From contig LSRY02000023.1 of the NCBI GenBank assembly GCA_001643675.2, positions 186,001 through 250,000 of the forward strand: a DNA stretch of 64,000 bases. The letters are read 5' to 3'. Below, piece by piece: positions 3,513-60,100 of the stretch. The notes beneath the pieces are model-generated. The model made no database searches. It was not told the origin of the DNA and was given only the letters and a program-made list of their open reading frames with translations. The stretch comes from Monocercomonoides exilis PA203 (Eukaryota; Protista; Preaxostyla). Numbering within the stretch: position 1 is the first letter of the stretch; each line of letters begins with the position of its first letter. A program made the position numbers and the translations under genes.

Positions 3513-4045
3513 AAGAGAAGATAAGGAGAAGAGAAGGAGAAGAGAAGGAGAAGGAGAGAATGAAGAAGAGAGGAAGAAGAGGGGAAGAAGAGAGAAGACG
3601 AAGAGGAAGAAAGATGAGGAGGAGGGGTGAATGCAGCATATAGAATGGCACACTCTGTTTATATTATAAGTTGTATTTGATACTCTCAATTATTATTCTT
3701 TATTCTGATCTACCCTACTCTTGTTATTTCAGTCTTACTCTATTTTTTTAAAATCGAAAGTGCTTTGATGCTCACTTCATATTGCCATCATCTCATTCGA
3801 TTTGCTATTTATTTTTTTTTTCCCTTCGACTTTTTGAAACCCTGAAGTTGTTGTTGCCTCTCATTTGAGAGAGATCAAGTCTTCGTTCGAAAAGAACAAA
3901 ACAATATGCTTATTTATATCTATGTGAAATGGATGAAATGCTGTGAGTGAAATGCTGCAGGAAATGAGAAGTGAAATTGAACATATGGCTATAAAAGAGA
4001 AATGAATAAATATTGAAATGATGAAGTGGTAATAGAAATACAGTT

Positions 4046-28682: not shown

Positions 28683-29814
28683 ATGAAAGAAAATGAATTA
28701 GAACGGCAATTTATTGTAGAAGGTGCCAATGCAGTTTTGGAGAATAATTTCTCAAATGTGGAAGAAGAAAGCAAAACACAAAATAATTATCCAAATTCTG
28801 TTTCAACTGAAAGGCCCAAAAAACGAAGAAAAAGGCGTCGCCATTTCGATTCAGAAGGCGATGTGGAAATTCATGCAGGAACATTAGCGTCAATCATTGT
28901 GCCAGTCAGTGTGGAAATTCTTACTAATTAATTTCTCAATTTCATATTCACTTCTAAAGGCATTACATTAATTGGAGTAATATTTGTAATTTTATCAATT
29001 GGAACAAATGGTGAATCATATATTTCATTATTTATAACACCAAGTTCTTCTCCGTGTGATTTCGGATAAAATTTATTAATTCCTTATATTTTATTTTCAC
29101 GGAACTCATTTGTTTTAGTCCCGATGGTTATTGTATACCTTTTGGACCAAAAGCAACTGGAAAGCCACCTCCCCCCGAAGATGAAGAAAAGAATAAAAAA
29201 ATAATTATCATTTCAATTATTGTTGCTGCAGTATTTGTTGTCATGATGGTTGCAGTGACATTTTTCATCCTTTGTTGCTACATGAAAGGTTTTACGAAAT
29301 TTATATATGGATGGTTAGTAATTGCAACCGTCATTCTGTTGGGACTTTTTGGTGGTACTATTATGTAGTATGTTTCAGTTTTTTGATATCATGAATGTAT
29401 ACCATTGATTTAATTATGTTTCATAAAACTTCATTAAAAATTCTATGCTGACATAAAATTAAAACTTCATTTTCTTCTTAGCAATCTTGTTATTCGATAT
29501 TCAATTCCTATTGATTGGTTCACATTCTTCTTCTTCTGCCTAAACTTTTCAGTTGCAGGGGTTATTTCTGTGTACATAACATCTCCTCTCTCAATCCAGC
29601 AAGGAATTCTTGTGTTCATTTCCATCTTTATGGCTTGGGCATTGACAAATCTTCCTGAATGGACAACTTGGATCTTGCTTGTCTTGGTGGCTGGTTTGCT
29701 CTTGGAGATGGGAATTTTGTGGTGCTTGAAGAAGATTTTTAATAGAAATCTATTGTTGATTAAAGAGTTTTTTCTTTCAACTTTTCCAAAAAAATTTTTT
29801 TTCAAGCAACATAC

Positions 29815-29849
<35 letters not shown>

Positions 29850-31012
29850 TATCGTATCAATATGATGGCAATACAACAGTGTATGATCTATTTGCTGTGC
29901 TGTGTCCGTGCTGTGCGCTGAACAAGCTGATTGAAATAGCAGACGAGAGAAACGAGCCAATACCTGGCCTGATCTACACAGCAGAGATGGGAGAAGAAAG
30001 GAAAGAGCGCATCAGAGGCGAAGGGAAAACAGAGAAGAAGAAGAAGAAGAAAGAAGAAAAAGGGAAAGAGCAGAAGAATAATAAAAATGATCAAAAAGAA
30101 ATTGAACCCGGGCAGGAAGAAACGCAACCGCTTCTGTCTTCGATTGGGATGAGGGACATTGGCAATGAAAATGAAGGGGTAGAAGAAAGAGGGAAAGGGA
30201 AAGAGAGAGAGAGTATTGTTACTGAAAATGCAAAAGAAAAAAACAAAGCAGTTGAAGCAAAGAAAGAGACAAGACGCGAAAAGAAAAATGACAAAATGAA
30301 AAGAACAGAACAAGAAGACATAATGAAGGAAAAGACGAGTAAGTCTGGGGCATTTCAGAGAGAAGAGAAGCAGAAGGAAAGTGAACGTAATAGCAACAAC
30401 GAAGCAAAGCTTTCCGAAAAGACTCAAAGAGGATCTTCAGAGAAGAGAGAAGGAGATGACGAAGATGCAACTTATATGGGTTTGTGGAAATACAAAATAA
30501 ATTTTTTTGGATAATTTTTGAAAATATTTTTCTTATTAATATTTTGGAATTATTTGGTTTTTAATCGCCGCTCACATTTATATTTAACTGTCTTCACCTG
30601 ATTATTTGTATTTATCAATAATGCTTCCTTTATCAGATGGAACATTGAGCCTTGGGCTTGGCGACTTCATATTCTACTCACTTCTCGTTTCCAGAGCTGT
30701 TCTCACCGACTGGAACACAACATTTGCGTGCTATTTTTCTATTCTATTTGTGTGCTAAAGCTGCTTTTCGTGTTATTTGCAAATAATAATATTTCGTTTT
30801 TTGATATCTCCATACTTTTTTTTTTTCAATATTTTTTATCAAATTTTCCTTTTTAGGGATTATCAATGACTGTTGTGCTTCTGGCTTTGTGGAGAAACGC
30901 TCTTCCTGCTCTTCCCATATCGATTTTCACTGGCACAGCAATCTACTTCGTTTCTCGCTTTCTTATTCATCCTTTTTCTTGTAATCAAGTATACTTAGGG
31001 TTGACTCTCTGA
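28683..31012 (+). CDS. PSEN: Presenilin (gamma-secretase catalytic GxGD aspartyl protease); multi-exon
   Basis: IIVPV, LPEWTTW..L, catalytic [10 protein letters not shown], a large hydrophilic loop, [10 protein letters not shown] and LPALPIS (PAL motif). Stop TGA at 31010-31012. Confidence 0.93.
29815..29849 (+). repeat. (TAT)n microsatellite inside presenilin intron 29694-29879
   Basis: About 11 perfect TAT units are directly visible. Confidence 0.9.
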
Positions 31013-35988: not shown

Positions 35989-38900
35989 ATGATAACTCAA
36001 AGCGCAAACACAGAAAGCAATGTGACACATAACCAAAAACAACAAGAAAGGTACTTACCCGAAATCCGTTTTGTTTTTTGATTTTATCGCATTTTTTTAT
36101 AAATTACAAAATTCAAACAAAGAAATGAGAGCGATTTCGCAGCTACAACAATCAAAAGCGATATGGAATCATCCCAAATCAAATTTTATAGCCCGGAATA
36201 TCATCCAGAACAAAACAGAGATGTGAAAGAAGCTGCATTATCTAAAGCGCATTCTGTTATAAAAAAGGAAGAGGATTCAATTGGCAAAGTTCCACAAGCT
36301 GCAGCAACATCTCAAATAAAGAGCAATAAAAAACCACCTCCAGAATACATTTCTCGCTCTAGAGGAAGGTGGATTTGCAAAGTTGGAGATTGTCATGCGT
36401 CTTACACATCAAAAAGTAATTTATATATTCACTTTAGAAAAAAGCATGAGTTAATATTAGAAGAGGATAACACTCCAAAAATATCTTCTCAAGAGCTTAA
36501 AGGAAAAATGAATGTAAATGATATGAAAAGCGAGAAAAGAGAAAAGAGTAAAAATAATCATAGAATTGAAAATGAAGGCGCAAATGAAGATGAAGAAGAT
36601 GAGGATGAACAAGAAGAGGAAGAGGAAGAGGAGGAAGAGGAAGACGATGAGGAAGAAGAAGAGGAAGAAGACGATGAACCAGAAGTGATAAAGAAGAAAA
36701 GTGGCAAAGAAGGTGAAAGTGGAGAGGAGGTATCAGATGCCATTGAGGTGTTTGAGTGTGCAGCAGAAGGCTGCAACAAGCAGTACACCCGCTTCAGCAA
36801 CTTCCAGCGGCACCAGAAGTCGAAGCAGCACAAGGGATTCACCAGAGTGGTGGTGAGCGAGAAAGCATACAGGGCAAAGCAGCAGAAGGAAAGCAACAGA
36901 GAGTTTTCGATGAAGCTGCGGCCGAACCGGATCTCGCGGACAGACTACGACGAAGACAAGGAATTTGAGGCGGTGAAGAAGCGGATGATGGCAGATGCCA
37001 GTGACTCCAGCACGAAGCAGGAAGAGGAAAAGGAGGAAAAGGAAGAAAAAGAAGAGAAAGAGGAAAAGGAGGGAAGCAAAACAAGTGGGCATAAAAACAC
37101 AGACAGTGCTGATAGGAAGAGCAAGACATCTGATGAAAGGAAAGGATCAAAAGATGCAGAAGAAGAAGAAGAAGAAGACGATGACGATGATGGCGATGAG
37201 GATGAAGAGGAAGAAGACAAGTCACAAAAGGCAAGAACGAGACATCAGCAACAACAACAGCAGCAACAGCGTCAACCAATCAGCAGCCGAAGTCGAAGCA
37301 CACGGAACAGAGCTTCTTCTGCCGGTTCCTCTTCCACTCCTCAGAACGACCCTGTCTCAAAGTCGCGTCCGTATTCGTGTCCGTTCGAAGGGTGCACACG
37401 CACATTCACCAAGCCAAACTACCTCAAAATGCATCAGAAGGCGCAGAACCACTACGTCGATGGAGAGGGAGAGGAGCCAGCAGGAGCACAGAAGGGTGGG
37501 AAGAAAGGGGAAGGGGATGACGCGGCAGAGGCAGAGAGAAGGAAAGAGATGAGGAGGAGAAGGGCGAGCCGGCTGGCACGCACAACACGCTCTGCCAGGT
37601 CTTCCAGACGTCTTCTGAGGAGACCAGCGAATGTTGCACACACTTCAGCCAGCACAGCTAATTCTGTTGGCTCAGTCAGCTCTGCACATTCATCAGCACA
37701 TGCAACACGCACTTCACGTGATTCACGTGATTCACACAGCACTCACAAGCATCCGCACACACGCAGATCATCCAGATCATCCAGATCATCTCGTTCTTCT
37801 CGTTCTTCTCATTCCTCTCGCTCTTCTCATTCGTCTGAGTCTGAATCTGAGAACGAGAGTGAGACTGAGACAGAATCAGGCAATGACGATACATCTGGAA
37901 GCTCAGAAGATGCAGAAGATACAGAGGAGTCAGATAACTCTTCGTCTTCTTCTTCTTCGTCATCATCATCATCTTCTTCTTCTTCTTCTTCTTCCTCCTC
38001 CTCCTCCTCCTCGAGTTCATCATCTTCTTCCTCTTCTTCTTCAAGCTCTTCCTCTTCTTCCTCTTCATCTTCTTCAAAATCTTCCTCCTCCTCCTCCTCT
38101 TCTTCTTCTTCTTCCTCTTCCTCTCATTCTCGAAGAGGCAGAAGTGTCAGCCGTGACAGTTCTCGCAGTTATTATCCATCTTCCTCCTCCTCCTCCTCTT
38201 CTTCTTCCTCTCTTCATTCCACCTCCTCTCCTTCCTACTCTCCCTCTCACTCACACATCTCTTCTCTTTCTCCTTCCTCTTCTCGTTCTCGCTCTCCTTC
38301 CCGTCCTCGTTCCTTTTCCCGCTCTATTTCTCGCTCCCTCTCCACCTCTTCCTCCTCAAAACTTCCTCCTCCTTCCTCTTCTACCTTTACTACCTCTTCT
38401 TCTTCTCCCTCCTCCTCTTCCTCCTCCTCTTCCTCTCCCTCCTCAACCCCCCACCCTCAACCCCGCCCTCACTCCACACTCTCTTCTTCCAGCAGAAAGA
38501 GAACAGAAGACGGCGCATTGATCGTCAGACCTTCGAAATTCACTCCGCCTGTGCCCACATCAACAGAGAAGCAGCTGGCACGCTTTTTGGCGAAGCATTC
38601 ACCAGACACACTGGGAATGATGGAGAAGAAAGGGCAAAATACTATCAATGCTATGAGTACAATGAATACAATGAATTCTATCAATGCAATGAACGCAATG
38701 AATGCACAAAACACACTAAATACATTAAACACACTAAATTCACTGAATTCATTGAATTCCTTGAATCCAATGAACAACCAGAACATTCAGAACATTCAGT
38801 TCAATCAAATCAGCCCACAAAACGCACAACAAAATGCTCAGTTTACGTCTTTCTTCACTCAAAACACTTCACAGACTCACCAGGCTTCATCGCCTTTTCC

Positions 38901-40948
38901 TGTGATATTTCCTCCTTCTTCTTCCTCTTCCTCTTCTCCTTCTACGTCCTCTTCCTCTTCCTCTTCCTCTTCTCCTTCATCTTCTCCTTCTTCCACATTG
39001 CAATCATCATCTTCTTCTTCTTCAGGTACTTCCACTTCTACCAACCCAACTCAAACATCTTCTGTAACTCAACTTTTTCCTTCCTCCTCTCCATCGTCAT
39101 CTTCTCCTTCTCCTTCCTCTTCATCTTCATCTTCTTCACAACAAGCACGCATTTCATTCATCCCTAACTTTACAAATACTGCTGCTCCCATTCCATTGCA
39201 GACATCATCATCTTCTTCTTCTTCTTCTTCACCTTCACAATCTCCATCGCTATCTTCATCATCCTCCTCTTCTTCTTCTTCTTCTCCTTTCCCTCCTCTA
39301 CCCTCTTCCTCTTCTTCTCCCTCCTCCTCTCCTTCTCCTTCTTCCTCTTCTCCCTCCTCTTCTTCTTCCTCTTCCTCTTCCTCTCTCCATTCTTCAATCT
39401 TTCCTCAGACATTGTCATCTTTCACGTCACCTTCTCCTTCCTCTTCACACAATGACCACAAATCTCTTTCACTTCAGCCTTTCCCTCCTGCTGCCAATGC
39501 TAATCCTGCTAATATTCATTCATCATCATCACCTTCCTCTTCCTCTTCCTCCTCCTCCTCTTCTTCTTCTTCTTCTCCCGTTTCTTCTCCCGTTTCTTCT
39601 TCCTCTTCCCCTCACTCTTCCTCCATCTCTGCTCAAATATCTTCCCAAATATCTTCCCAAATAGCGTCTCAAATCTCCTCTTCCATCTCCTCCTCTCCTT
39701 CTCCTCTGAACCGCCCTGCTCTTTTCACTTCTGTCTATTTTTCTCCTTCTCCTTCTTCATCCAAACAGACAAATAAACTGCCTTTGCCTTCTCGCCCTTC
39801 TTTCTTGCCTTCTTCTTCTTCTGCTTCTTCTTCTTCTCCTTCCACTTCTTCTCCTTCTCTGTCATCATCATCATCTTCTTCTTCTTCTTCATCGCCTTCC
39901 TCCTCTCCTTCTTCTCCTTCTTCTTCCTTTTCTTCTTCCTTATTAGCACCATCAGCATCTTCCTTCTCTTCCTTCTCTTCCCAACTTCACTTGCAAACTA
40001 ATTCTCTTTCTTCTTCTTCTTCTTCCTCCTCTTCTTCTTCCTCTTCCTCTTCTTCTTCTTCTTCTTCCTCTTCCTCTTCCTCTTCTCCTTCTCTTTCTCC
40101 TTCTTCTGCTCCTTCTGCGTTCACCTTCTCCTCTGCCATTCCTTCCTCTTTCGCTCCTTCTTCCTCTTCTCCTTCTTCTTCTCCTCCTTTCCCTGCCCTC
40201 ATCTCAACTCCTGCTCATCCACACAAACATTCACATTCACATTCACACACTCATTCACCATCATCATCAGCTTCTTCTTCTTCTTCTTCTTCTTCTTTTT
40301 CTTCTTCCTTCTCCCCTTCTTCCTCTTCTTTATCACCGTCACCTTCACCTTTACCATCATTATCATTGTTTTCATCATCATCTTCTTCTTCTTCTCTTTC
40401 CTCTCCCCTTTTCTCTTCTTCTTCCCCCTCTTCCGCTTTCACCTCTTCTCCTTCTCCTTCTTCATTCTCATCTTCCTCCTCCTCCTCCTCCTCCTCTTCT
40501 TCTTCTTCTTCTTCTTCTTCTTCTCGTGTAAGATATTCTTCTTCTCTTCGCTCTTCTTCTTCAGCAGCTGAGCAACAAACAGACAGTTCTTCATCTCATT
40601 TAAGCAAAAAGCAGCAGAAGAAGAAGGAAAAGAAGAAAGAAAAGAAGAAGGAAAAGAAGGAGAAGAAGGAGAAAGAGAAGAAATATGGCGAAAAGGAAGA
40701 GAAGAAGGAGAGAAAGAAAGGAGAAAAGGAGAAGGAGAAAGAGAAAGAGAAAGAGAAAGAAAGGAAAAGAGGAAAAGAGAAAGAGAAAGAAAGAGAAGAA
40801 GAAAGAGAAGAAAATGAGAAAGGAAAAGACAAAGAAAAAAGAAGAAAGAAATCAAAAGGAACCGAAAAAGAAAGAAAAAGAGAAAAAGAGAAAGAAAAAG
40901 AAAGAAAGAACAAAAAACAAAGAGAACGAGCTATCAAACAAGAGAAGC

Positions 40949-40979
<31 letters not shown>

Positions 40980-41466
40980 AAGAGAAAGAGAAAGCGAAGC
41001 GAAAGGGAAAGGGAAAGAGGCGCTGTATGAAGAATATCCGAGTGAAGAAGAATCAATTGCAGAGGTGTTCTCCATCATAGGCACTTTGGCTTCTTCTCTG
41101 AACACACTCACGCTGCAGCTGGCATTTCTGATCAGCCAGAGCAGAAGAGAAGGGCAAGCCATGGCGCATCCACTGGATGTGCTGTCAAATGCTATGAATG
41201 CTGCTACTGCTGCTAATGCTGCTGCTTCTTTGAATTCTTCTTCTTCTTCTCTTCCTTCTGGTTCTTCTATGAATTCTATGAATCCTTCTTCAGTTAATCC
41301 AGTTAATTCGGTTAATACAGCTAATCCAACTTCTTCTTCTTCTTCTGTTAGAGATGAGATGAAATCAGCCCAAGGCAATCAATCAATGCTGATGATGATG
41401 ACACGGATGAATCAGATGAATCAGATGGGACAGGCATCTTCTTCAAATACTGCTGCTTCTGCTAAT

Positions 41467-41502
<36 letters not shown>

Positions 41503-41529
41503 CTTAACAGTACTTCAACTCATTCTATG

Positions 41530-41560
<31 letters not shown>

Positions 41561-42168
41561 CTTCTTTATCTTCCAACATTTCCTTCCCATCATTTCCACA
41601 GCCATCATCATTAACATCTTCCTCTTCTTCTTCCTCTTCCTCATTGCCTTCATCATCATCATCATCTCCTTCTTCTTCTTCTCTTATTCCTTCATCAGAT
41701 TCAGACATCTCCTCCACTTCCATCTCTTCCACCACATCCAAATCTTCTTCTTCTTCTTCTTCTTCTTCTTCTTCAGACAATTCTCCTTCACCTTCTATCT
41801 CTTCCACTCAACCTTCTTCTTCTTCCTCTTCTCCTTCCTCTTCTTCTTCTTCTCTTTCCTTTCCTCATCTATTTCCTGAAGCCCACCAAACATCTGCTTT
41901 CTTTCCTCGTGTTCCAACTTCTTCTTCTTCTTCCTCTTCTTCATCTCCACCTTCATCATCATCATCATCTTCTTCTTCTTCTTCCACTTCTGTCAATATT
42001 GAAATGTTATCTTCTTCCTCTTCTCTTTCTTCTTCTTCCTCTCCTTCATCTTCTACTTCTGCTTCAGACGCTGATATTCCCTCTGCTTTATGCTCTGCTG
42101 ACAAGAAGAGTGCAAAGCCGGCTGTTGGACATGCGTCTTCAGACACACCGGAACTAATTATAATTTAG
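35989..42168 (+). CDS. C2H2 zinc-finger protein (three dispersed fingers) with extreme poly-Ser, acidic and Lys/Glu low-complexity regions
   Basis: Fingers are CKVGDC..HFRKKH, CAAEGC..HQKSKQH and CPFEGC..HQKAQNH. A probable 5' exon at 35989-36050 splices (intron 36051-36122) in frame into ORF 36163-42168. Confidence 0.75.
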
Positions 42169-45873: not shown

Positions 45874-47404
45874 ACTTTTTTTGATTAAAAAATTATTTGA
45901 ATTTTTTAATCTGCAAAAAGGAGTTCTGGAAAAGAATAACAAAGAACTGTGTTTTTTGATACGTATTACAAAAAATGAATTCGTTTCGTTCACATTTTTC
46001 GATATCAAAAAGTTCATCCTGTGTGCAATATTTTTCATAGAAAAAGCATAAAGTCACATATTTTTCAACGAATATAAAAAAGAAAAATTTTTGTGAAAAA
46101 TGTTTTTTTAATTTTCAAAGAACAATAAAAATCAGAATATTGTTGAAATCATTTCTATTGGATGCGAAAAATAAAGAGAGATTAAGTTTGAAAAACGATA
46201 TTGAAAAGACGGAGGGTGGAAAATTATTGTTTCTTTTTTGTTGCTGTTGTGCTTTTTAATAATAGCCTTGAGCTTGAAGTGCTCAGTTTCATTTGAGATG
46301 ACAATAACTCACAAAAAAGATTGAAAAAAACTCAACAAAAATAAATTATGAAGCTATTTTTCTTTTCGAATCAATCTTTTTCTCTTTTTGAAATCTTCAA
46401 AATTTAAGTTTTCTAAAATAAACTAATATTTGATCTTTTTTATCATCTGATTTGAGAAATACCATCCAAATCAGAAGTTCAATTTATGGTCATAGTTGAT
46501 TCGTAAAAATGTCACTTTTTGTGAACCCACTTTATTCGATAAAGACATTTAAAAAAGATTGAAAAAAAGCGAAGTTGAAATATTATTAATGCTTCAAGTG
46601 TTTTATAACCTATGGATCAAAACACAAAATGATTGAATTGTTTTTATTCTCATTTCTATTTTCGTTGTTCTTTTTTAAACATCATTTTTATTATTTAATT
46701 GTGGCATAGGTCTATTTTGTACCAGTTTGGAAAGGCTTTTTAAAATATTTTTATTAACATATTATTAATTCTCATAATTATTGCAAACAAACTGCTAATG
46801 GAAAATCGAGTAATTCTTCCATCAAAAACTTGATATTTTTTCTTTTTTTCTCAACCCATAATTTTATCTTTTTGATCATGATCTATTTAAAAAGATTTCA
46901 TTACAATGCCATTTTAATGAAATGATACTTGATCATATTTGACATTGTTGCATTGACAATTTCCTTGTTTTTATTTGAAGGAATACAGACCGATGAATGT
47001 TTGAATGTAGAGTATATGAAAAAATACACATTTGAATGTTTTGTTCGCCTTAACAAATTTTTTTACTGATATGACGCAAGCAGAAATATGTTGTTCCCCT
47101 TTAATGATCAGATTTATAGTATGTTTATTAATTTGCATTGATAATATATGAATTTTTACATGTTTTTTCTTTCTTTTTTTGTTTATCGTTTTTTTGATGA
47201 TTCAGCAATTGTGTGTTTAAGTGAATGACATTTTCATATTATCTTTTTGTTAGCATCACTTTATATTTCTCCATTCAGAGGAGGATAAAAGGATTTCAGC
47301 AATTACCTTTTTCTGTGCAAAATATGGATCAATTGTTTGTTTTTTATTCATCATCATCGAATATCGTTAAGTTGTGTTTTAACAAAAAGCTTACACAACT
47401 TTTC

Positions 47405-47880
47405 AATATGATTTATTGTCGTTTCCCTTTCTTCCACGGATGCAAATGCTCAGCCGATTCTCCACTTGGCCACGATGCGAATTATGTCGATTATAACAAT
47501 GTCTTTTTGAATTCAGACAATCCAATTTATGAATGCTACACAACAAACGCAGATGATAAGAGAGTGTGCTATGTGTATAATTATTCGAGTTCAGGGAGTT
47601 GGGTGTATGATCAAACATCAAAAAAGGATTGGCTGAAAGACAAGACGATATATGTTTCAATGAATGGAAATGATTCATATGAGCTGTGTGGGGCTAATAC
47701 AACAAATCCGTGCGAAACAGTGAAGAAAGCATTTGAGATGTGTGAGGTGCAGATAAGCTTGGCAATCACGCTGATGGATGGGAATCACATAAGCGAGACA
47801 ACAACAATTGAGATTGGATCAAAGAAGATTTCAGTTATTGGAATGGGCAAAGAGAAGAACGTGATTGGAACAGGAGCTGT
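47405..47880 (+). pseudogene. Captured internal fragment of a beta-helix receptor-family gene (copy A)
   Basis: FFHGCKCS...NPIYECYTTNADDKRVC...IYVSMNGND..LCGANTTNPCETVKKA is the same module type as in the two giant receptors. No signal peptide, TM or tail is present. Confidence 0.75.
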
Positions 47881-48699
47881 TTTGCTTTTATTCTCTGCTC
47901 TGCAGTATTTTTATTCTCTTCCTTTTATTTTTTTCATCTCCTTCAGACTCGTCTTCTTCGTCTTCTTCGTCTTCTTCATCTTCATTTATATCTTCTATTT
48001 CTGTTTTGTTATCTTCTATTACATTTCCATCATCGTCTATTTTTAATATTTTGGCTGTTGGAATTATTTGGCTGGAAGCTATGCTGAGAAAAGGAAATAA
48101 ACAAAATTTGGAAGCAGAAGAGGACCAATTTCATTGGCCGTGAGATAGAAAGCGGAGATGGAGAAGAAGGGTTTTGAGATTGAAATTGGAGGGATGAAGA
48201 AATACTAGTCGGAGGAGGAGAAGAAACGACGAGGAAGAAAAAGTGTGTGAAGAAAACTCAAAATAAAAAGGTTTGCTGTATAATTTGTTTTGTTTTTCTT
48301 GTACAAAATTAATCCTTTGATGTTTCTGTAATATTTTTTTCATATTTTTCTTTGAATAATTTTATATCATTTATTTTTTATAATTATTTTATTTCAATAA
48401 GGATTTTTGGGTAATTATTGAAAAGGGATGAAAGTGAATGGAGTTTTTAAAAGAAGACATCAGATTATAGTGGCAGAAAAAGAGAATTTGTTGAAGATGG
48501 ATAATGAAGAATGTTTGAATGTTGTTTCTATTCAGAAGCATTGAAGAATAAAGATGCTTTTCTGCTTTTAATGGGAGCTCATCGTCTTCAGCAGAAGAGG
48601 CGGGGAAAGAATCTGACTTTAGAAAATATTCTGCTACATGGCGCGGAGATGCAAAACAGGTATATAATCAAAAAATTAAAAGAGAAGGAAGCGTTTCAG

Positions 48700-50150
48700 T
48701 ATGCGAATCTCTCATCTCATCTTCTGCCCCGTTCCTTTCATCGCCTTCCATCCCTTTTGTATCCTTCTCTCATCTGATATTTTTCAATATTTCAACAGCA
48801 AATGAGGCATGTTCAACTCCGACCACATCCTTTCACCGAATCGCATGTTTTATAAGCAGCTGCTCATTCTCATCAGTGTGTGACTCATATGATGGCGGGA
48901 TTGTTCATTCCCTCAACAACCCCTTGGCCTCTCTGACTGCCTCAAACACCTCGTTTGTTGGGTGTTGTCGGACAAGAAATGTTGAATGCAATGGAACTGC
49001 AGATAATAAGAAACAGCTAGGGAGGCAGAACATACCGGAAAATGGAGATAATTCATTTATTTGGTGCGAGTGGAATGAATCAAGGACGACTGGAAGCAAA
49101 GATGATTACACTGATGATGCTTCCAATGGTGGAGCAATTCGAATGTGTTATCTCAATTCAGGAGAACTTTCAGTTTCTCATTGTTCATTCAATGATTGCT
49201 ATGCTCATTATGCTGGAGGAGGTGTCATGTGCTATGGAATCAGTTCGGTTGAGATTGAACACAGTTTTTTTAATTCTTGTGAAGGACAAAATCGCTTTGG
49301 AGGAGGAATGTTTATCAGATCAATTTTGAAATGCTTCGTGATGAGCGGTTGTGAATTCTTTAAATGCAAAGCAAGAAACGGAGGAGGAGCAATGCTAATT
49401 TATGATTTCAATGAGTCAAAATCTGATTGTACCGCAACTGTAAGTGGTACTGCGGAGAGCGCTTGTGTGTTTGAGTGCTCTTTTTCCACATGTTCTCTGA
49501 CAGGTTCACATGGTGGAGGAATGTATTGCGCAAAGGTTCCAGCTGGATTCAAAATGTCGAGCATCCAGTTCCTTTTTTGCTCCGCTTTTCAAGAAGGAGG
49601 AGGAATGGAATTGAATCCGAGTCAATCAGAAGCTCCAAGCAACAATCATTATTGTTATTTCATCTTCTTCCACGATTGAAGTTGCAGTAATTCCACTTCA
49701 TCTGGCCGCGATGTGTATTTTTCTGATGGAAACAATCTTTTTTCTTCGAACAATCCGTTCTACGAATCGTACACAACGAATAGTAATGATAAGAGAGTGT
49801 GCTATTTGGTAAATGGAGCATATCAGCATACAGAAAAGATGTGGTGGCTGAAGGAAGGGATGAAGGATCGGTATGTTGGAGTGAGTGGGAATGACTCGAG
49901 CAATCTGTGTGGGATGAGTGAGGCAGCACCTTGCAAGACAGTGGAGCATGCGGTGGGGCCAATCATGGCGCAGCTGAGCTCTTCGATCACAGCGCTTGGT
50001 GGAAAGCATATGAACGAAGAGAAGACGATCAGTGTTGGGGAAAAGAAGATTAATGTTTTGGGGAAATGAAAGGAGACGAGCGTGATTGGAACAAAATCAC
50101 TTTCATTATCTTCAACAACGCTGTTCAGTGTGACGGGTGGGCAGTTGGAG
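48700..50150 (+). pseudogene. Captured fragment of a beta-helix receptor-family gene (copy B) with in-frame stop and frameshifts
   Basis: DGGIVHSLNNPLASLTASNTSF..FIWCEWN..GGAI matches receptor 1 (DGTILPNLNSPSTSLSAFNTSF..FEWCEWN..GGAL). There is an in-frame TGA at 49677-49679, and the frame breaks near 50065. Confidence 0.8.
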
Positions 50151-50259
50151 TCGAAATATTTTTGCTGGCTGAAATAACAGAAAATCCCAGGTTAAAAGAC
50201 AGTCAACTAAAAAAAGACCATTCGTATTTGTGCTGGCTCGGATACAGCTGCCAATAACT

Positions 50260-50800
50260 GCCTTTGAGGTGTTTTAACAAAATTCTACTGCATCCTCTCG
50301 TCTCCAAGCTGCACTCCTCCCAATCTCCGTTTCCATTGCTCCCATCGCATCCCCAGCTGTTTTGGCCCATCCAGACACCAGGATCATCGAAAAATTCTTC
50401 TGTTGCGAAACATCTCCAGCTGCGCCCTGCCGAGAAATAAAAAACGAAAAAAAAAAAAGAAATAAAAAAGGTGCAACACATTAATAGCTCCCTCGTGAGG
50501 CAAACAAAATGACACACCTCCACCAGGATGGCTGAAAAGATAACTGCGTGAAAGGAAACAACGCCACCCACCGACACCAGACTGCCCCAAGCCTGCTCAT
50601 ACGGCCAATTCACTACATTTTGCAATGACAGCAAAAAGAAAGAAGCATCACAAACATGTTCCATGTGCTGACACAGCCCTCATACAGACAAATCGCTGCC
50701 CCATTTCCCAGTCAGCCCAGAGGCTCAGCAGCAGTACCACCTCAAGGATCGAATCACACCCCTCAGAGAGTCCAGTGCATTATGTCTGCTCCACGTTACA
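50260..50800 (-). pseudogene. Degenerate papain/cathepsin B-like cysteine protease fragment (with an intron remnant)
   Basis: VNWPYEQA...WMGQNSWG..GSNG...EECSLE resembles the C1A C-terminal GP.E.A / W...NSWG..WG.NG / NEC.IE pattern. A T-rich intron-like segment lies at ~50427-50479, and there are multiple stops upstream. Confidence 0.45.
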
Positions 50801-52937
50801 AATTCTTTTTCAACACGCTTTTCGTTTTTCATTTCAAATAACATATGTGCGCAATTCATTCATTGAACTTTTCCTGATCTCTTTTTAAAACAATATATTC
50901 TTCAATAATTGAGAAATGAAAGTTTTTCAAAGGCAAAACAAAAAAAAGAAATGCCTTGTATTTGTCGAGTTTTCTGTAAACTTACAGCAAAATGCAGAAT
51001 CTGAAAAACTTGAGATGAATAAGATGAGTTCTGATTAGATAAGAACATAAAAAGAAGATGGAATGAAAAAAGAAATAAATGAAGTGAATTAAAAATTAGA
51101 GAAAACAGATTTTGAAAGTCATCCACAAAAAAACTTGACGATTTTTGTGGATTTTTGAGTTGATTGCCATCCGTCCCAACGTCGCATCTTTCAAATGATC
51201 GTTTTCCTTCTCTTTCCATCTTTTCTTCCTCCTCTTCTTTCTCTCGAACCAACAGACTTCACACTTCCAATCCTTTATATCTCCTTTGATTATTATTTCT
51301 CGCTTTTCCAAAATAAATTGCCCCTGCTCTCTCGTATATTTCGTCTTCGACTCCATCTGCTGCTCCATGAGGCTTGTGCTCTTAAAAAATATCCTCATCT
51401 TTGTTTGCTGACTTTAAAAGTGCATTCTCTTTCATCGATTTCACTCCCTATAAACTCCGGCTCATCATTCTCTCTTTTCTTTTCGTTCTGCCTGCTTTTT
51501 CTGTTGTCTCTACTCCGAAATGAGCAGCTTCTTCCACTTCCTCCATCGCCAACAGGCTCGCCGAAGGTTAAACCAACATTTCTGCAGAATACGGATTTTT
51601 CACACTCAAGCACATCACGACTCCTATCATTCGCTCATCACATCTCTTTCTTCTCTTATATTTCTTATTTTTTCTTTCACAAAACATTCCTTCAAAATTC
51701 AACACAAAAACAAAGCTCAAAAATACATAACCTCATTTTCCCAATGCATTGAATGTTCCTCCTTCCTTCCTTCTGCGCTGCCATTCTTTCTTCCTAGAAA
51801 AACTACACATGAAAAGATCTGCTTTACTGGTTTCCTGCTTTCCTTCTTCCAACGAGACGTCTTGAAGCCGAATTCCAGCTGTTCATCTCTTCTTCTTCTT
51901 TTATTTCCTCTTTTATTCCACTATCTTGTCGAATAGATCCATTCCTTAAATATCTTCTCTCAACGTGTTCCTCTCTTCCATTCTCTTCATCTTTTCTTGA
52001 AAAGTTCCAATTTCGCCATTCTCACTCTCCCATTGCAAACAATTAACTTCTGTCAAAAGCAGCAATTATATCTATCTTTTATATAAATTCAATGTTTATC
52101 ACAGAATGAAAAAACAAAAATGATAAATGTTCCAATAATTTTTAATTCATTGTCAACTGTTTTTCACAATTAATAAAACATTTACCTTTATAAATGGTGT
52201 CTTTCGATAAATAATAAAAAGTAACATCTATTATTTTGCTAAGACTATTGAATAATTAAAGTAATAATTTAGTTAAGAATTTCTTCATAACAAACAATGA
52301 ATGTGAAAGTTCGATTATCCAAACAATAAAAATATTATTCTCTCTTTGAACATTGAATTGTGAAGTTGTCCTGAACTTTGCTAAGTCGAAAAATTGTGCT
52401 TTCAATTCTTTGTGATCTAAAAGTTAGAATTATGGGTTGAGAAAAAAAGAAAAAATATCAAGTTTTTGATGGAAGAATTACTCGATTTTCCATTAGCAGT
52501 TTGTTTGCAATAATTATGAGAATTAATAATATGTTAATAAAAATATTTTAAAAAGCCTTTCCAAACTGGTACAAAATAGACCTATGCCTTAATTGTTTAT
52601 AATCCACCCAAATAATTGCATATCGACCTAATACACAAATTCAAAAACAAAAAAATATCATTTTGTTATAATAAAATTAATTTCACAAAATAATATGTGA
52701 AATTCTTTTTGATTTCAGATTTTTTTCAATCACAATTTTCAAATTAACAATTTGTCGCAAATATTTAGAAATCAATCAAATGTTTTTTCAAATGTCATAA
52801 ATGAATTTCACTGTCTTTTTATGACAACACACATTTAAGGACAACAACTTTTAAGAATGAAACGCTTTTTTGAAAAAAATTTTTGAAAATAACTGTGTAT
52901 AAGAAAATTATTCACCCCACGAAAAAATATATGATTT

Positions 52938-53586
52938 GGGTGATTATTTTAGAAATTATATTTTTTCTGTAAAAAATTTTTGGTTGAATATGAGTTTAAA
53001 ATATTGGTTGATGAACATAGAAAAATAAAGACGATGTTGAATTTCATATCTTCTTTTTGCATTCATATCAAACTTTGGCTTTTGAAAATTTTCTGAAACA
53101 ATTATCATAAGGAAAAAAATTATTTCTGAATTGACGAAAAACTATTTTTAAAACAATTTTTCAAAAAATATTAAAATTTGGGTGATTATAATTGAAAAAA
53201 TAACTTATTACGGAGTGTTGTTTCTTTTGATATTTCGTTTTGAAGGATATGAATTTTTTATTCAAAAGAAAAAAAACTTGACAATTAGGGTAAAATACGG
53301 TCTTTCAAGCTTTTTTTTGCACAAGGCATAGAAAAAATTGTTACACTTATCACATTATTGAACTTTTTCAGATTTTAAAATAAATTAGATTATCAAAATT
53401 GAAAACGAACATCATTGATGAAATAACAAAATGTTCAGTGACCGCATATGCATTTCGGTGAAAGTGCAGACTTTCAAGCTTTTTTTGCACAAAGCACGAA
53501 AAAAATGTTTCACTTATAACATTTTTACACTTTGCCAGATTTCAAAATAAAAATTTCTTTCATTTCTGCAAACAAACATCATTGAT
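52938..53586 (+). repeat. Cluster of diverged GGGTGATTA-family repeat copies, including a tandem duplicated ~115-bp block
   Basis: GGGTGATTA starts occur at 52938 and ~53180. The block CTTTCAAGCTTTTTTTTGCACAA...AACATCATTGAT appears at ~53301-53419 and ~53471-53586. Confidence 0.6.
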
Positions 53587-54142: not shown

Positions 54143-57100
54143 ATGCTCCTATTTTCCATCTGCAAGATTATTTTGATTTTTTCGTTTTTCTCATGCGCAG
54201 ACTCATATAATCTGCAACTAAAAACTTATTTACAGAGTACTAAAAGTCTCAATGGTGCAAACAACGATTACTGGGATAATTGGCCGACTATCCAAGATAA
54301 TGACAAAACTCCGACAGTTAAGAATAAAAATTATGAAAACATAAGCGGAAAACGATCTTTAATTGAAGTTTCAGATTTCTCTCATTCGTTTACAATTATT
54401 GATTGCTCGTGGACAAATATCATTCAAGACGATAGATTTATTGTTGGGCAAAATGGAAATATTACAATACAAGATTGCAAATTCAATAAAATAACTATGA
54501 TTTCTGATAGGCCTGTGATTGAACTGAAAGGTATTCAAAGAGTTATTATTGAAGACACGCAATTTTCTGAAACATCAAGATTGTCAGATGGCTCAGTTAT
54601 TGACTTTGACATTGGAACCGATGAATCAACGCTTGACATTACCAAATGCAATTTCACGAATTGCAAATCAACAGCTGGTTGCGGTGGTGCAATTTCTGGA
54701 ACTGTTGGTAGGGGAAAATTAACAATTACTGGATGTTGGTTTTCCGAATGCACTTCCAAAAAAGAAGGAGGTGCTATTTATTTAAGGTCCGGCAATGCAT
54801 TTGAAAATCAATTTATATTGAAATGCTTAACATTTGACAGGTGCTCAACAGATTCTTCACGAGGAGGGCACTGCTTACTTATAACAAACTGGAATCGAGA
54901 AAAATATCCTATCACTGTTGAAAATTTTGCTTCCTTGAAAGGAGTTACAGACAATCCAAAAAGTATTCTCTTTACTGATTATGATGACATTATTGATACT
55001 TCTTTCTCTGTTTCTGAGATCCCTTCGTCAAAAGAATGCATCATTTCTGTTTACGTTGATGACTCAGGAAACGACGCAAATGATGGCTCAGAAGAAAAAC
55101 CAAAGAAAACTTTAGATGGCGCAGTTTCTGTTTTGGGTGATGATGACATTGTGTTGGTGATTGAATCAGTTGAATTGACTGAAGAATGGAAAATTTGCTG
55201 GAAAAAACTAGAGATCTGCCCATCTAAAAATAATTCCCTAATATATGTGAAAATATCTGGAACAGGCTCACTTGTAAATGATGAAGGTGTAGGCGCATAT
55301 AAGCTTTTATCATTCTCAAGCTCAATATTTCATTGGGAAACAAGTGTAACTCAAATATCTTCTTTTGCTTCACTTTCATTGGGATCGCTTTCATTTGAAT
55401 CGTGCAACTTCGTCTTTGAAAATACAGATATTTCGACGACTTATTCTGATGCCATGTTTTCTCTTCTCAACAAAGGCGAAGGAAAAAATGGAGGAAAGCT
55501 TTTATTAAACACAGTTTCTGTTACAGGATTTGATTGGAGCTCAAATTCTTTCATCAAGACAACAACTGGGCAGCTTGCGCTGACATACGTAGAGTTCAAT
55601 TTTGAAGGGGATATACTCAAAAAATCGTCTTTCATTTGCTGTGAGAGAGGAACTCAGATTTTTTCAATGAAAAATTGTAAGTTTGAAGATGTGTCAATTC
55701 ACATAGGAAGCGGTGCTAAAAAAAATTCAATGGCTTCATTTTTCTCTTCTTCATCGTCTTCTTCATATTCTTCTGTTATAAGAAAATCTTCATTCTTTTC
55801 AAGCACATCTTCTTCTTATTCTTCTTTGAATGCTGGCACAGAAGTTTCAAACGACGCATCGAATTCTCCTTTTATTGCAATCAATGCAGCAGATTCTGTT
55901 TCCATTGAAGGCTGCACATTTTCAGCTATTTCTTCTTCCACTTCTTTGAGTGGAGGAGCACTTTCTATCACAATTCCTTCATCACCATCATCTTCTCCTT
56001 TTCCCTTTTTGGCGATTCACAACTCCTCTTTCTCTTCTTGCGAAGCATCAGAAGCCAATGGCAGAGGAGGTGCCATCTTCTTGTCGCTTACAGGCTCTTC
56101 AGAAATCGGTGCAAATGCTATCGAACTGACTCAACTGATTTTCTCAGGCAACAAAGCAGCTAAGGGAACAGATGTTTATATTCTATATGATCATTTGAAG
56201 AATTGTATATCTGATTGGGATTTGAGCAAGACAACAAAACCTAAAATGTCACTGAACGCATTGTATGGTTGCGAAACCTCTTCTCCTTCTGGGCCAAGTG
56301 ATGAGTTCTCTCTGTATCCGTTTTTCTATTCATTTACTGACAATTCTGTGTATGTTGATTCGTCAAGTGGCGTCAATGAAGATGAAGACGATGCGTGTGG
56401 TTATTCTCAATGGCCTTGTTCAACTCTTCTGAAGGCAATGAATCACCTCAGCTCAGATGTTAATATTGTCAAAATTGTAACTTCACTTTCTGTGAATGCA
56501 GTTGTTGGTTTAAGCGGAAAATCATTTTCTTTCCAATCTTCTTCTTCTTCAAAATCTTCAGTTGAAGTCGCTATTAACTCTGGATTTACATGCAACACTG
56601 CATCTGCTTCTAATTCTGATTCTATCGCATTTAACAATCTGATTTTTAATCTTCCAAGCGAAGGTACTCCTTCTGCTGTGAAAGCATTGTTTGCTCAATC
56701 AGCAGAGCAGATAACTGTTTCCAGCTGCAATTTTGGCAAGGCAAATGCTCAAACAAAGAAGAACTGTGTTGTCAATCTTGCTGTTTTGACAGGAGGGATA
56801 TTTACTCTACAACAGACATCCATTCAAAGCATGTCTTTTTCTTCAGCACAAGAAGGAGGTGTTATTCAAGCTTCATCAGGCGCTGTACTGAAAATTGACA
56901 GATCCACATTTTCTTCTGTTGTTTTGGGAAGTGATGTGCTTATAAACTCAAATGAATGCAATTCACTGTCAATTGAAGGATCAACCTTCAATGATATTTC
57001 ATCAACTAGCCCAACAGGAACAGTGGGATTTGTGAAAATGAAACAAGGAAATGCTTTCTCTGTGAAAAGTACATCATTTTCAAAGTGCAGCGGATCTTCG

Positions 57101-60100
57101 GGCACAGCCTCTGCTTCGCTGTATCTTCAATTAGATAATTCAATTGATCCATCTTCTTTAACTGACAGTCCGTTACACGTTGAGAAGCTGACATTCACGA
57201 AAGCCGATGGACTAACAGAAGAAAAAGAGACTTTTATCTTTGTCGATGCGAAGAACCTGAAAAATATTGTTTCTTCTTCTTCATTCGTTTTTGACCCACT
57301 ACCAACAGACTTGAATGCAATGATGGGCAGAGAACGCTCGACAACTAATGAGGAATTGGATATTCCGCTGCTCGTCTATTTGTGGAGCAATTTCACTTCC
57401 ACTGGATTTGTGAGTGATAAAAATGGAGGTGATTTCAGTGGCTGTGGGTTTTCTGAAGCACCTTGCAAGACAATCAAACATATTCTCGACCTGAGATTCA
57501 ATGCATTTACACTAGATAAATCAACTGTGAAGGTTAAAACGTCATTTTCGATTGATGAGCCGTTGCTTCTGAGTTCTTCGAATAAGAAGTTAAGTCTTGA
57601 AAGCTCAGAAGGAGAGAGCACTGTGCGTATAACAGACACAGACGCCAGCAACACCCAACAATGTTTTTTTTTAGTTGGAATGGACTTTTCAATAAGCAAA
57701 ATCACTTTGTCAATTCCCGAGAATTTGAACAACTCAAGATCATCTCTGCTCACTTGCTCAGCTCAAATACTGTCTTTTCAGAATAGCAAAATTGCATTGG
57801 CTCAATCTGTTATTCGTGTTTCTTATGATGTTATTGTGGCTGAAGGAGCAGGATGTCTAAATGTGGATCATCTTTCAATGGATAATGTGTATACAGTTAG
57901 TGGAAAACATTTCATTGCATATCGAGCAATAGATGAATCGAGCGTTTCTGGAGTGATTTCTTTTCTTACTGGAACTTTCATCCACCAAGGTGAAAGTGGA
58001 ATAATTCTGATTGAAGGCAAATCAAAATGCGAGATTAAAAATGCCACTCTGTCTCATGAAAGTGATCGCGATTCATCAGCTCTTAAAGTCAAAAGCGGCA
58101 AGAGTTTAACAATTGATAATTGTACATTCCAGAAATGTAAAGTTAATTCCGCAAATGGAGGTGCAATCTTAATTGAAGAGTCAAAATCGCCAGATTTTGT
58201 TTCTGAAATCCATATTAACAACTGCATATTTGATCAATGTGAAACATTAGCTCAATACGGGGATGGCGGAGGCATTTACGCACACCCAGTTGCAAGCACG
58301 AACTTGGTTATAAGTTCATGCATATTCAAGTTATGCAAAGCTTCAGCTGAACCCACAGTGACAGGCTATGGAGGAGGTATTTATCTCGATTTGACAGCTA
58401 ATTCCAACAATTTTATCATCAGTTCTCCAACTTTTGGTGAAGGCGATAAAGTCAATTCTGCTTCATTTGGAAAAGATTTGTTTGCAAGTTCTGCCTCGCT
58501 CAAAGACAGCATCAAAGAGCAAACTCTTCCATTTGCCAAACAGATTCCAATAGAAAATGTTAATTCGATGAGAGGGTTTGATGGAAACGATAAAGACAAT
58601 GCGATTCCGCTTGTTTGTTTCTTCCATTCTTATGGCGATGTTCCATATGTGGGAGAAGATGGTGCTGATGTTAATGTGTGCGGATTTACGGTATATCCGT
58701 GCAAAACTGTTCAAAAAGCGCTGGGAAAGATAGAAAGTACTGAAAAAAGGCAAGTGTTTGTAATGGAAGGAGCGAAAATTGAGGGAGAATTGGCTGTCGA
58801 AGATATTGAGCATTTGATCATTGGAAATAGTGTCAGCCAGCAGGCCAAGCCAGTTCCAATTAAGCAAAAACTGATTATTGTGAACGGCGGAACAAACACA
58901 AAGGGAATTATAAATGCGAAAGTTAAATGCACGTTTGAGTATGTTTCATTGAACATCCCTCCCTCTTTTGGATATCATACTTCATTAATTGAGCTTTCAG
59001 TACCTGAATCTAATCTCATTCTGAACAATGACGACTTTGTTTTTTCAAGCGAATGCAATACACTCATCATAAACGCACTCCAAGGATCAGTGAGCATCAC
59101 AAGCTGTGACTTGATCAATCAGAATTTGAAATCGTCTATTCTTGAAATATCGTCTTCTGCTGTGTCTGGAACGATCGATAACTTAATAGTTGATGGAATC
59201 ACAGTTTTAAATTCACCACTAATAATTATTTCACCTGCTTCTTCTGCTTCTGTTTCTTTTTCGAATACACAATTTTCAGTCGAGAATAATCATCGTACCA
59301 ACGACGAATGCATTGTCAGCATCACAAACAGCAACTTTACGAATATTGAGCTCAGTCAAAATGCAGGTGGATGTGTTATTTCTCCGAAGCCTCAATCAAA
59401 CTTCGATGCAATTAACTGTATTGTTAATGGAACACAGTTTAGCAGCGGTACCTCGTCTTCAGACAAAGGCGGGGAGATGCTATTTACTCTTCCAGCACCA
59501 GATGGATCTTTGATGATCGAAGATTGCTCATTCATTTTGTGTTGCACTTCATCAAATGGAAGAGGAGGTGGCTTGTATCTTGATTGTATTCCGAATCAAC
59601 ATCCCGATGAAGCAAAATCTCCTGTTTTAAATTTTCATATGAAATCAGTAAATTTCTCAATGAACAACGCTTTTTATGGTAAGGATTTCTTTATCTTTTG
59701 CGACAATATCAATGAGCAAGTTACGAATGAGCTGTTTAGTTTGGATTATTCTCAGACCACATTTAAAGATGACAAAGCATTTTGTGGTACAGATGCATCT
59801 CAAACAGACATTAATCTCTTGTCGTTGATACGTTTCTACCGCTCAGAACAGATCTTTGTGTCGTCTTCAGCTCAAGAGGAAGACAGTATGTGCGGTACAG
59901 AAAACGTACCATGCAGGTCAGTTTCTGAAGGAATGAAGCATATTAACGAAGGTTATATGCGCTTTCTATGCATTATTGCTCAGGCTGACCTTGGCGGAGA
60001 AACGGTGATGAATGCTTTAAGTGTCAGGCCGTTCAGAAATGAAAATTACAAGATAAACATGATGAGAGAATATGCTAACACGACCGCTGATTCTTCGTTG

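Follow-up and report, generated by a model that had tools for sequence, protein, structure and literature searches.

A non-autonomous, probably Merlin-like transposon in Monocercomonoides exilis carries receptor-family fragments in which tracts appear to have been replaced by paralogues

What inserted at this locus, and where did its gene-like content come from? In the 64,000 nucleotides of Monocercomonoides exilis PA203 DNA that were analysed (the window), a 5.9-kb segment with terminal inverted repeats (TIRs) occupies positions 46703-52588 between 8-bp duplications. A sequence-only reading had described it as a probably recently inserted element with 161-bp perfect TIRs, an exact 8-bp duplication and no transposase, its interior being a mosaic of pieces of several captured host genes. 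The inverted-repeat arms were first detected at 46697-46891 and 52400-52594 (195 nt, 94% identity). Read from the true ends at 46703 and 52588, the arms were identical over 161 nt and agreed at 173 of 176 positions (98.3%). The left TIR (46703-46891, plus strand) starts with GGCATAGGTCTATTTTGTACCAG and is up to about 189-195 nt long, and the right TIR (52400-52588, minus strand) is its inverted-repeat match. The octamer TTAATTGT is exact on both sides of the element (46695-46702 and 52589-52596). The exact duplication and the near-identical termini bear out a recent insertion as a single unit, and no interior ORF matched any transposase family. What inserted here, recently and as one unit, is thus a cut-and-paste DNA transposon of the non-autonomous kind, without its own transposase.

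The 30-nt terminus occurred 28 times in the 82-Mb genome and its reversed control not once, which excludes a chance origin of the termini. A genome-wide search for GGCATAGGT-N6-TGTACCA gave 164 termini, against 0-1 for the control, and thus a lineage of about 80 copies, the terminus of which is GGCATAGG and starts with GGCAT. The termini proved to be paired and not solitary repeats; among those listed, the spacing of the pairs was consistent and the copies were mostly 3.3-4.8 kb. TIR length in the lineage is 172-227 bp and element size 3.4-5.9 kb. All seven fetched copies had an 8-bp duplication of their own, which was perfect in all but one, where a single base differed (TTAATTGT, AAAATATT, TTCAAATT, the imperfect GAATGTAT/GAATATAT, CGTGAGCA, CGCAATAT and CACCTTCG). 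Within an element the left and right TIRs show 98-100% identity, against differences of 10-25% between subfamilies, so some homogenisation of TIRs occurs. The 5.9-kb composite was present at three sites (the window, C80 and C91), and at two of these the duplications were intact and differed from each other. As the three copies sit in unrelated flanks, the composite was mobilised as a unit after it had gained its cargo.

The interior begins with the subterminal part of a left end of 'type II' (46892-47410, plus strand), which is 83% identical to element L038 on C27. Cargo fragment A (47411-47877, plus strand) comprises the linker and the beginning of the beta-helix module of a receptor-kinase ectodomain family; it lies inside the ORF 47225-48046 and is the positional homologue, with 65-70% identity, of the fragment in the 3.7-kb elements. 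A low-complexity spacer (47878-48550, plus strand) separates it from fragment B of the same gene family (48551-50174, plus strand), a 541-codon open frame with two in-frame TGA codons. The last 240 codons of fragment B have 65% protein and about 75% DNA identity to the fragment of all 3.7-kb members. The segment at 50452-50830 (plus strand) is conserved: C42 and C80 hold dozens of inverted-pair units in which it likewise comes after the beta-helix ORF. The right interior and subterminal region (50831-52399, no strand assigned) is 83% identical to element L037 on C23 and occurs in family-C copies as well; no coding family was recognisable in it. Two different paralogous plus-strand fragments of one receptor family were therefore present, as had been claimed. 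The rest of the proposed mosaic was not supported. The minus-strand ORF 50203-50664, taken earlier for a cathepsin B-like fragment, falls at the conserved segment; minus-strand interior ORFs matched no Pfam family at E values up to 1, and in other copies the same stretch is conserved DNA with frame breaks. A second minus-strand fragment with exon/intron-like structure was not identifiable in searches of the interior ORFs, and no gene other than the receptor family was identified in the remaining 2.2 kb of the interior.

Judged by its sequence, the cargo is a piece of a species-specific family of receptor-like tyrosine-kinase ectodomains, and this ectodomain is probably built of beta-helix repeats. 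The family comprised more than 2000 first-look candidate loci, with frames of 2000 up to 4494 aa. Giant ORFs of the window, whose terminal domain is a Tyr-kinase domain, match the cargo at 25%. The relatives of the cargo in protein databases were all M. exilis entries named 'uncharacterized protein'. The predicted structure had a pLDDT of 57.7, and a Foldseek search with this model gave no match below E 0.09; the weak matches were nearly all right-handed beta-helices. The 3' breakpoint of the main fragment was the same in every family member examined, which points to inheritance from an ancestral element. The cargo was evidently captured once, in that ancestor, and not by the window copy. With this shared breakpoint and all readable cargo coming from one gene family, the idea of a multi-gene capture was given up. 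Of the loci on C33, C37, C9, C12 and C40 that were considered as TIR-less parental loci, those on C33, C9, C12 and C40 were rejected, as they adjoin or sit within family-C termini.

Spliced transcripts contain parts of the element interior. Two RNA-supported GT..AG introns were present, at 47335-47389 in the left subterminal region and at 48271-48401 in the spacer, and both joints were found in RNA only. Exact RNA contigs covered 50955-51314 and 51811-51964 in the right interior; over 51758-52048 the sole contig had 9 mismatches. No RNA contigs lay over the TIRs, in contrast to the exact contigs over the interior. The RNA came from metatranscriptome runs kept as contigs, which give neither strand nor transcript ends.

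Comparison with other members shows the 5.9-kb variant to be a recombinant of two members of the lineage. An L038-like element contributed the left 1.2 kb and an L037-like element the right 3.1 kb, with about 1.6 kb more between the two parts, of which roughly the last 0.9 kb is upstream gene sequence. This recombination accounts for two paralogous fragments in one element. An ancestral element gained a truncated piece of receptor ectodomain, the 3' breakpoint of which the descendants examined retain, and the recombinant, mobilised as a unit, then reached at least three sites.

The three 5.9-kb copies differ from each other in an uneven manner. Their backbones diverge by 0.1-1.2%, whereas cargo tracts with sharp boundaries diverge by 11-31%, with dN/dS of 0.24-0.46 and dS of 0.6-1.3. 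The first tract (48781-49481, 701 nt) lies in fragment B and differs from the C80 copy by 31% without a gap; the second (50481-50977) overlaps the conserved segment. The divergent tracts of the other two copies lie at C80:675978-676678 and C91:287450-290044, and the three copies hold three different versions of one tract. A short-read contig (49362-49594) crosses one tract boundary exactly. This combination of nearly uniform backbones with bounded, divergent tracts of low dN/dS indicates that cargo tracts were replaced by paralogous coding sequence after, or during, the moves, while the backbone stayed 99-100% identical. The parental gene family had been sought, and it was found; a donor with at least 80% identity to the divergent tracts of the window copy was absent from the assembly, where the best match was not above 78%.

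A different explanation is that the beta-helix ORF is a working passenger gene, a small secreted or surface beta-helix protein being spread and varied along with the lineage, and that selection explains the low dN/dS. Several copies keep an open ORF (267 codons in the window and C80, about 380-540 codons in C29, C1 and C7), dN/dS among copies is 0.3-0.55, spliced RNA contigs match the window copy exactly, and the gene models MONOS_10306 and MONOS_16430 are annotated on the cargo. However, in-frame stops or frameshifts interrupt the ORF in most family-A copies, and neither end of the parent gene is present in the fragment. Divergence in place cannot give backbones that differ by 0.1-1% beside tracts with dS of 0.6-1.3, and tracts taken over from working paralogues would show a low dN/dS in any case. 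We therefore regard a working passenger gene as unlikely.

The superfamily had been left between Merlin and Mutator. At least 575 Merlin candidates with PF12762 (DDE_Tnp_IS1595) were found in the genome, and a six-frame search of the whole genome with PF10551, the sole Mutator model used, gave no MULE candidate, for which reason Mutator was rejected. The GGCAT end of the lineage is the exact start of four of the seven published resident Merlin families (F1, F2, F4 and F6; PMC8101967), only 5-6 terminal bases being common to the lineage and resident Merlin TIRs. Because the MULE domain is absent, Merlin is abundant and the GGCAT end matches resident families, Merlin is supported as the better fit than Mutator. 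The 8-bp duplications of the seven fetched copies agree with the 8 or 9 bp expected of Merlin, and the 5'-GG start and the TIR length lie within the Merlin range (24-462 bp; PMC8101967). Merlin is the most likely superfamily, and on balance a resident Merlin transposase (of the IS1595-type DDE) would have mobilised the element in trans.

The search for a cognate autonomous partner with an IS1595-type or MULE transposase found none among the copies read and the Merlin candidates listed. The transposase was absent from every lineage copy read; larger lineage members, beyond this set, lie at C34:618706-627800, C12:1113710-1122699, C21:186551-194386, C40:833747-840620, C7:1247970-1254323, C13:808102-815119 and C74:69871-81348. 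A scan for the Merlin catalytic-block motif in 320 kb of sequence was negative. No PF12762 match lay inside a lineage member among the 150 candidates listed out of at least 575; among the matches listed, Merlin matches adjoin three lineage copies (C10, C58 and C74) but do not lie within them. A beta-helix fragment at C27:193556 is a candidate, as an intact Merlin ORF of 643 aa is found at a distance of 2 kb. Two larger copies were rejected as sources of a transposase. The C59 copy owes 14.5 of its 17.9 kb to another transposon that inserted into the right TIR. This second element is flanked by a 4-bp ATAT duplication, ends in GGGTGATT termini of its own and encodes a USP/UCH protein whose family has at least 3004 candidates. 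The 513-aa DDE_1 ORF in the C7 copy belongs to a pogo-type element that is nested there; it has a TA duplication, CAGT termini and at least 85 relatives elsewhere.

Movement by the transposase of another superfamily with 8-bp duplications (hAT, P or a relative of Mutator) would fit some of these results. The genome contains 41 hAT dimerisation domains in ORFs of about 900 aa, and an 8-bp duplication by itself does not discriminate between hAT and Merlin. A TIR length of about 200 bp is typical of Mutator, whereas the TIRs of resident Merlin elements have 23-29 bp (PMC8101967), and among the copies read no Merlin ORF was found between lineage termini. The missing MULE domain and the shared GGCAT start nevertheless speak for Merlin. 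The TIRs of hAT elements are expected to be short and start with YARNG; those of the lineage are about 200 bp long and start with GGCAT, so that only the duplication length fits hAT. Another superfamily thus appears rather improbable.

A likely route of cargo-tract replacement is ectopic gene conversion, or else template switching in the repair of the double-strand gap left by excision, with the more than 2000 genomic paralogues acting as templates and sequence passing from paralogue to element. The mosaic pattern alone is silent on which part was converted. The copies could instead be old, with backbones homogenised by gene conversion among transposon copies and cargo that kept its original divergence; the close TIR identity within elements, despite the differences between subfamilies, is in line with this. 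The duplications are intact, however, and the tract boundaries are sharp and confined to coding cargo. Neutral divergence in place would also lead to dN/dS near 1 instead of 0.24-0.46, and old copies do not explain one tract in three versions across three copies. We consider this explanation very unlikely. Replacement of tracts by paralogues supports the proposed remixing of receptor modules indirectly, and for element cargo only. It is a speculative extension, with little probability in our view, that the lineage forms a standing exchange hub for receptor ectodomains. Each mobile copy has a conserved module between stretches of family-wide homology; excision and repair would, time and again, load it with the sequence of another paralogue and carry this to other sites, and conversion in the opposite direction could write transposon-borne variants into working receptor genes.

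A segmental duplication or an assembly artefact is a practically negligible explanation: although the assembly is Nanopore-based and repeat-rich, the 164 termini are paired at consistent spacing, seven different 8-bp duplications and unrelated flanks were found, and both junctions between TIR and interior recur without any mismatch in independent short-read DNA contigs (46798-47548 and 51002-52455). The whole account, a non-autonomous and probably Merlin-like element with a single capture, a recombinant origin and replacement of cargo tracts, has in our estimate a probability of roughly 80%.

In M. exilis, 'unclassified repeat' makes up about 35% of the genome and overlaps with the tyrosine-kinase family (PMC8767320). 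The lineage accounts for part of this overlap, and annotated 'genes' such as MONOS_10306 and MONOS_16430 are transposon cargo. Near-identical copies with paralogue-level difference confined to the cargo provide an unusually clean record of cargo change, the least understood step in Pack-type biology. An exchange hub, if it existed, would mean transposon-driven diversification of the largest surface-receptor family of this protist.

Merlin elements are known from the same strain with more than 100 copies, seven or more families, 8-bp duplications and GG-starting TIRs (PMC8101967). The lineage shares with families F1-F7 the genome, the duplication length and the GG start. Those families measure about 1.4-1.5 kb and have 23-29-bp TIRs and a DDE_Tnp_IS1595 transposase, while the lineage has 3.4-5.9 kb, TIRs of 170-230 bp, no transposase and host-gene cargo. 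Non-autonomous MITE-like Merlin elements, as summarised in PMC8101967 after Feschotte (2004), have TIRs of 24-462 bp, 5'-GG ends and 8-9-bp duplications. They resemble the lineage in the 5'-GG, the TIR length range, the 8-bp duplication and the lack of a transposase; in that summary they are short and without host coding sequence, which the lineage carries. Animal Pack-TIR elements (PMC8277862) are likewise TIR transposons with gene fragments outside plants; Merlin is not in the text of that study, and a search for comparable tract replacement in near-identical copies is not known from it. Plant Pack-MULE, Pack-CACTA and Pack-TYPE elements (PMC8903248, PMC6379663) are also non-autonomous TIR elements with duplications and host gene fragments. 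They are transcribable, and their gain of DNA is thought to occur in gap repair. The word 'Merlin' has no occurrence in PMC8903248, and Merlin-like elements and oxymonad hosts lie outside both surveys. The window element shares with Pack-TYPE elements the TIRs and duplication without a transposase, interior fragments of non-transposon host genes and, with three copies of the composite, mobilisation after cargo gain. It does not merge several different genes, its two fragments belonging to one gene family, and the genome lacks the MULE transposase family (PF10551) that a Pack-MULE calls for. In plants the fragments usually differ between copies and often come from several genes, whereas in this lineage the fragment of one family was apparently inherited and then overwritten. 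Gene-carrying TIR transposons are known from plants and animals, and a Merlin-like one in a metamonad would extend this range.

The window element is a real transposon, non-autonomous and recently mobile, whose inherited receptor-gene cargo is undergoing paralogue swaps. Inverted-repeat comparison placed its arms at 46703-46891 and 52400-52588; 161 nt were identical between them, 173 of 176 positions agreed, and similarity could be traced to about 195 nt. TTAATTGT was found at both flanks, so that the inverted termini and exact 8-bp duplication claimed by the sequence-only reading were confirmed. Contigs from an independent short-read DNA run corresponded to 46798-47548 and 51002-52455 with zero differences, and both junctions between terminal inverted repeat (TIR) and interior are therefore real. 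The GC content was 33-44% in the element and 24-26% in the surrounding intergenic DNA.

The element lies between a giant C2H2 zinc-finger ORF (36163-42168, 2001 aa) and a giant receptor-kinase ORF (54143-62746, 2867 aa). A further giant ORF (13508-21802, 2764 aa) is, like the receptor-kinase ORF, a single exon with a C-terminal tyrosine-kinase domain. The window also contains an SNF2 helicase (4046-8335, minus strand), an MA3-domain protein (25618-27942) and a presenilin (29570-30514). Immediately right of the element, at 52866-53202, short direct and inverted repeats were present (52922-52960/53164-53202 and 52866-52891/53143-53168). They include TTTGGGTGATTAT, reminiscent of the GGGTGATT termini of a USP-type transposon described below, and may represent a small relative of it.

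The genome-wide TIR search that had been proposed from the sequence was run on the Nanopore assembly of M. exilis PA203 (82.3 Mb, 101 contigs; PMC8767320). The 189-nt arm gave 30 matches and the 30-nt terminus 28, compared with 0 for the control. Among eleven loci fetched, seven elements had their own 8-bp target-site duplication (TSD), one with a single mismatch: those on contigs C18 (TTAATTGT), C91 (AAAATATT), C21 (TTCAAATT), C17 (GAATGTAT/GAATATAT), C46 (CGTGAGCA), C13 (CGCAATAT) and C59 (CACCTTCG). Copies with the window-type terminus (family A) typically measured 3.4-3.85 kb. Sister subfamily B, with 18 termini, was reached via a related terminus on a contig published with the Merlin survey of this strain (PMC8101967). 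The core common to A and B, GGCATAGGT-N6-TGTACCA-N-TTTG, had 81 forward and 83 reverse matches (control, 0 and 1), which corresponds to a lineage of about 80 elements; these fall into at least four TIR subfamilies, and most measure 3.3-4.8 kb. In the window element and five fetched loci (L032-L036), left and right TIRs were 98-100% identical over 170-230 nt, while TIRs of different subfamilies differed by 10-25%; the two ends of one element thus evolve in concert.

The first 1175 bp of the 5.9-kb element matched an element on C27 (L038) at 83%, and element positions 2766-5886 matched one on C23 (L037), also at 83%. The 5.9-kb variant is therefore a recombinant with two paralogous cargo fragments, A (47411-47877) and B (48551-50174). 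Of the roughly 1.6 kb in the middle, about 0.9 kb continues fragment B in the upstream direction, so that its frame reaches 541 codons and contains two TGA codons. Two further copies of this type were found, one complete with its own TSD (C91:285849-291724) and one truncated at a CTT repeat (C80:673900-679121). As the flanks of the three copies are unrelated, the composite transposed as a unit, in agreement with the earlier claim that the segment had inserted as one piece.

Consecutive stretches of the window and C80 copies differed at 4 of 2060, 219 of 701, 1 of 979, 70 of 495 and 8 of 878 nt, and the divergent 701-nt stretch had no gap. The backbones of the window and C91 copies were mostly 0.3-1.2% different (3.3% over 4875-5270), with 11% across fragment A, 11% in the right subterminal region and 24% across 2.6 kb comprising fragment B and its downstream part. 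Likewise, the C21 and C17 elements were 96-100% identical, but only 74-88% over the cargo. In the window copy, one of the tract boundaries lay within a short-read contig that matched exactly (49362-49594). The tracts had dN/dS values of 0.24-0.46 and an open frame in two of the three copies, indicating that their versions diverged as constrained coding sequence of paralogous genes instead of in place. Most economically, the tracts would have been replaced via ectopic conversion or template switching during repair; a repair-based mechanism of this type has been proposed for Pack-CACTA (PMC6379663). No donor more than 78% identical to the tracts of the window copy was found in the genome; either this copy retains the older state or its donor has disappeared.

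A first look gave more than 2000 genomic candidates for the 240-codon fragment carried by the 3.7-kb elements; many of them lie within open frames of 2000-4500 aa, and one of the two kinase-bearing giant ORFs of the window matched the cargo at 25% identity. All protein-database relatives were M. exilis proteins that are uncharacterised and have no Pfam domain, and one entry was 100% identical to an ORF of a sister element. These three observations identify the cargo family as the species-specific receptor-like kinase family that overlaps 'unclassified repeats' in M. exilis (PMC8767320). A beta-helix is plausible for the cargo: the fold model was moderate (pLDDT 57.7) and gave no significant structural match, and the weak ones were nearly all right-handed beta-helices.

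The sequence-only reading had described a mosaic of fragments from several genes, which was not supported. Cargo homology stops at one common point in all family-A copies (...QLESK, then a common tail), and fragments are also present within copies of subfamilies B and C, which argues for one old capture instead of a fresh multi-gene mosaic. Most family-A copies have stop codons in the cargo. Public annotation places genes on transposon cargo (L038:1718-3484, L032:1542-2264 and others), namely MONOS_10306, MONOS_16430, MONOS_11755, MONOS_8923 and MONOS_4898. Separately, the entire contig C42 and C80:1.79-1.96 Mb contained dozens of inverted pairs of 430-750-aa beta-helix ORFs at 4-11 kb spacing, each followed by the same 380-bp segment as window 50452-50830. 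No GGCATAGGT-type termini occurred there among the matches listed, and the pairs could form arrays of a different cassette family.

Contigs of four sequencing runs were compared with the element; the RNA evidence consists of metatranscriptome contigs, which carry no level, end or strand information. Contigs of two RNA libraries were identical to 47390-47599, 48035-48270, 49417-49654, 50505-50717 and 50955-51314, and matched 48399-48560 with one mismatch; none in the two libraries covered the TIRs. Two joints, 47334>47390 and 48270>48402, were present only in RNA, both GT..AG in plus-strand reading.

No ORF of the window element matched a transposase family, and two candidate autonomous copies were rejected. 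In the C7 copy (L036), the DDE_1 ORF belongs to a 2.56-kb pogo/Tc1-type element nested within the cargo ORF (L036:1948-4503), with a TA duplication and perfect TIRs, about 25-35 bp long, that begin CAGTCGGTGCC (CAGTCGG...); this ORF is intact (513 aa), with at least 85 relatives in the genome, one 98% identical. The excess length of the 17.9-kb C59 copy is a separate 14.5-kb transposon nested at position 60-63 of the right TIR (L049:4373-10000 plus L050:101-8963; C59:394472-408962); this transposon is bounded by a 4-bp duplication (ATAT) and by imperfect termini of its own, which begin GGGTGATT. It encodes a protein of 1092 aa (L050:2381-5656) with a UCH/USP deubiquitinase domain in residues 169-466, and no transposase domain was recognised in the C-terminal 626 aa. 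A first look gave at least 3004 candidates for this protein family, most of them intact ORFs about 1000 aa long.

A Merlin or MULE partner had been suggested. The MULE domain PF10551 had no match in the genome; hAT (PF05699) had 41 matches, and the Merlin domain PF12762 at least 575 candidates. PA203 is known to harbour over 100 Merlin copies from at least seven families, all with 8-bp TSDs and GG-starting TIRs of 23-29 bp (PMC8101967). In the published alignments the termini are GGCATGATCC (F1 and F2), GGTATAAGGG (F3), GGCATATTGT (F4), GGCAAGACCT (F5), GGCATGAGCA (F6) and GGTAAGTGGG (F7); that of the window lineage is GGCATAGGTC. TSD length, GG start, TIR length range and first five bases are thus all compatible with Merlin. 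Among the matches listed, no Merlin match lay inside a lineage copy, three copies (C10, C58, C74) had adjoining ones, and no transposase-bearing element with lineage termini was found. Merlin would therefore be the most likely driver (probability roughly 0.6). A candidate transposase-bearing relative is the locus C27:193556-196634. There, a plus-strand beta-helix fragment in an open frame of 428 codons is separated by 2 kb from a minus-strand ORF (643 aa, intact) that carries a full Merlin DDE domain; this Merlin has near-identical copies at C38:48471 and C63:215678.

The window element behaves like a Pack-TYPE transposon and has the core features of that group, apart from combining pieces of different genes. 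The Pack-element surveys of plants (PMC8903248) and animals (PMC8277862) do not mention Merlin. By structure the element fits the Merlin superfamily, without the defining transposase link, and its driver is probably Merlin. The PA203 Merlin survey covers only autonomous families of 1.4-1.5 kb (PMC8101967).
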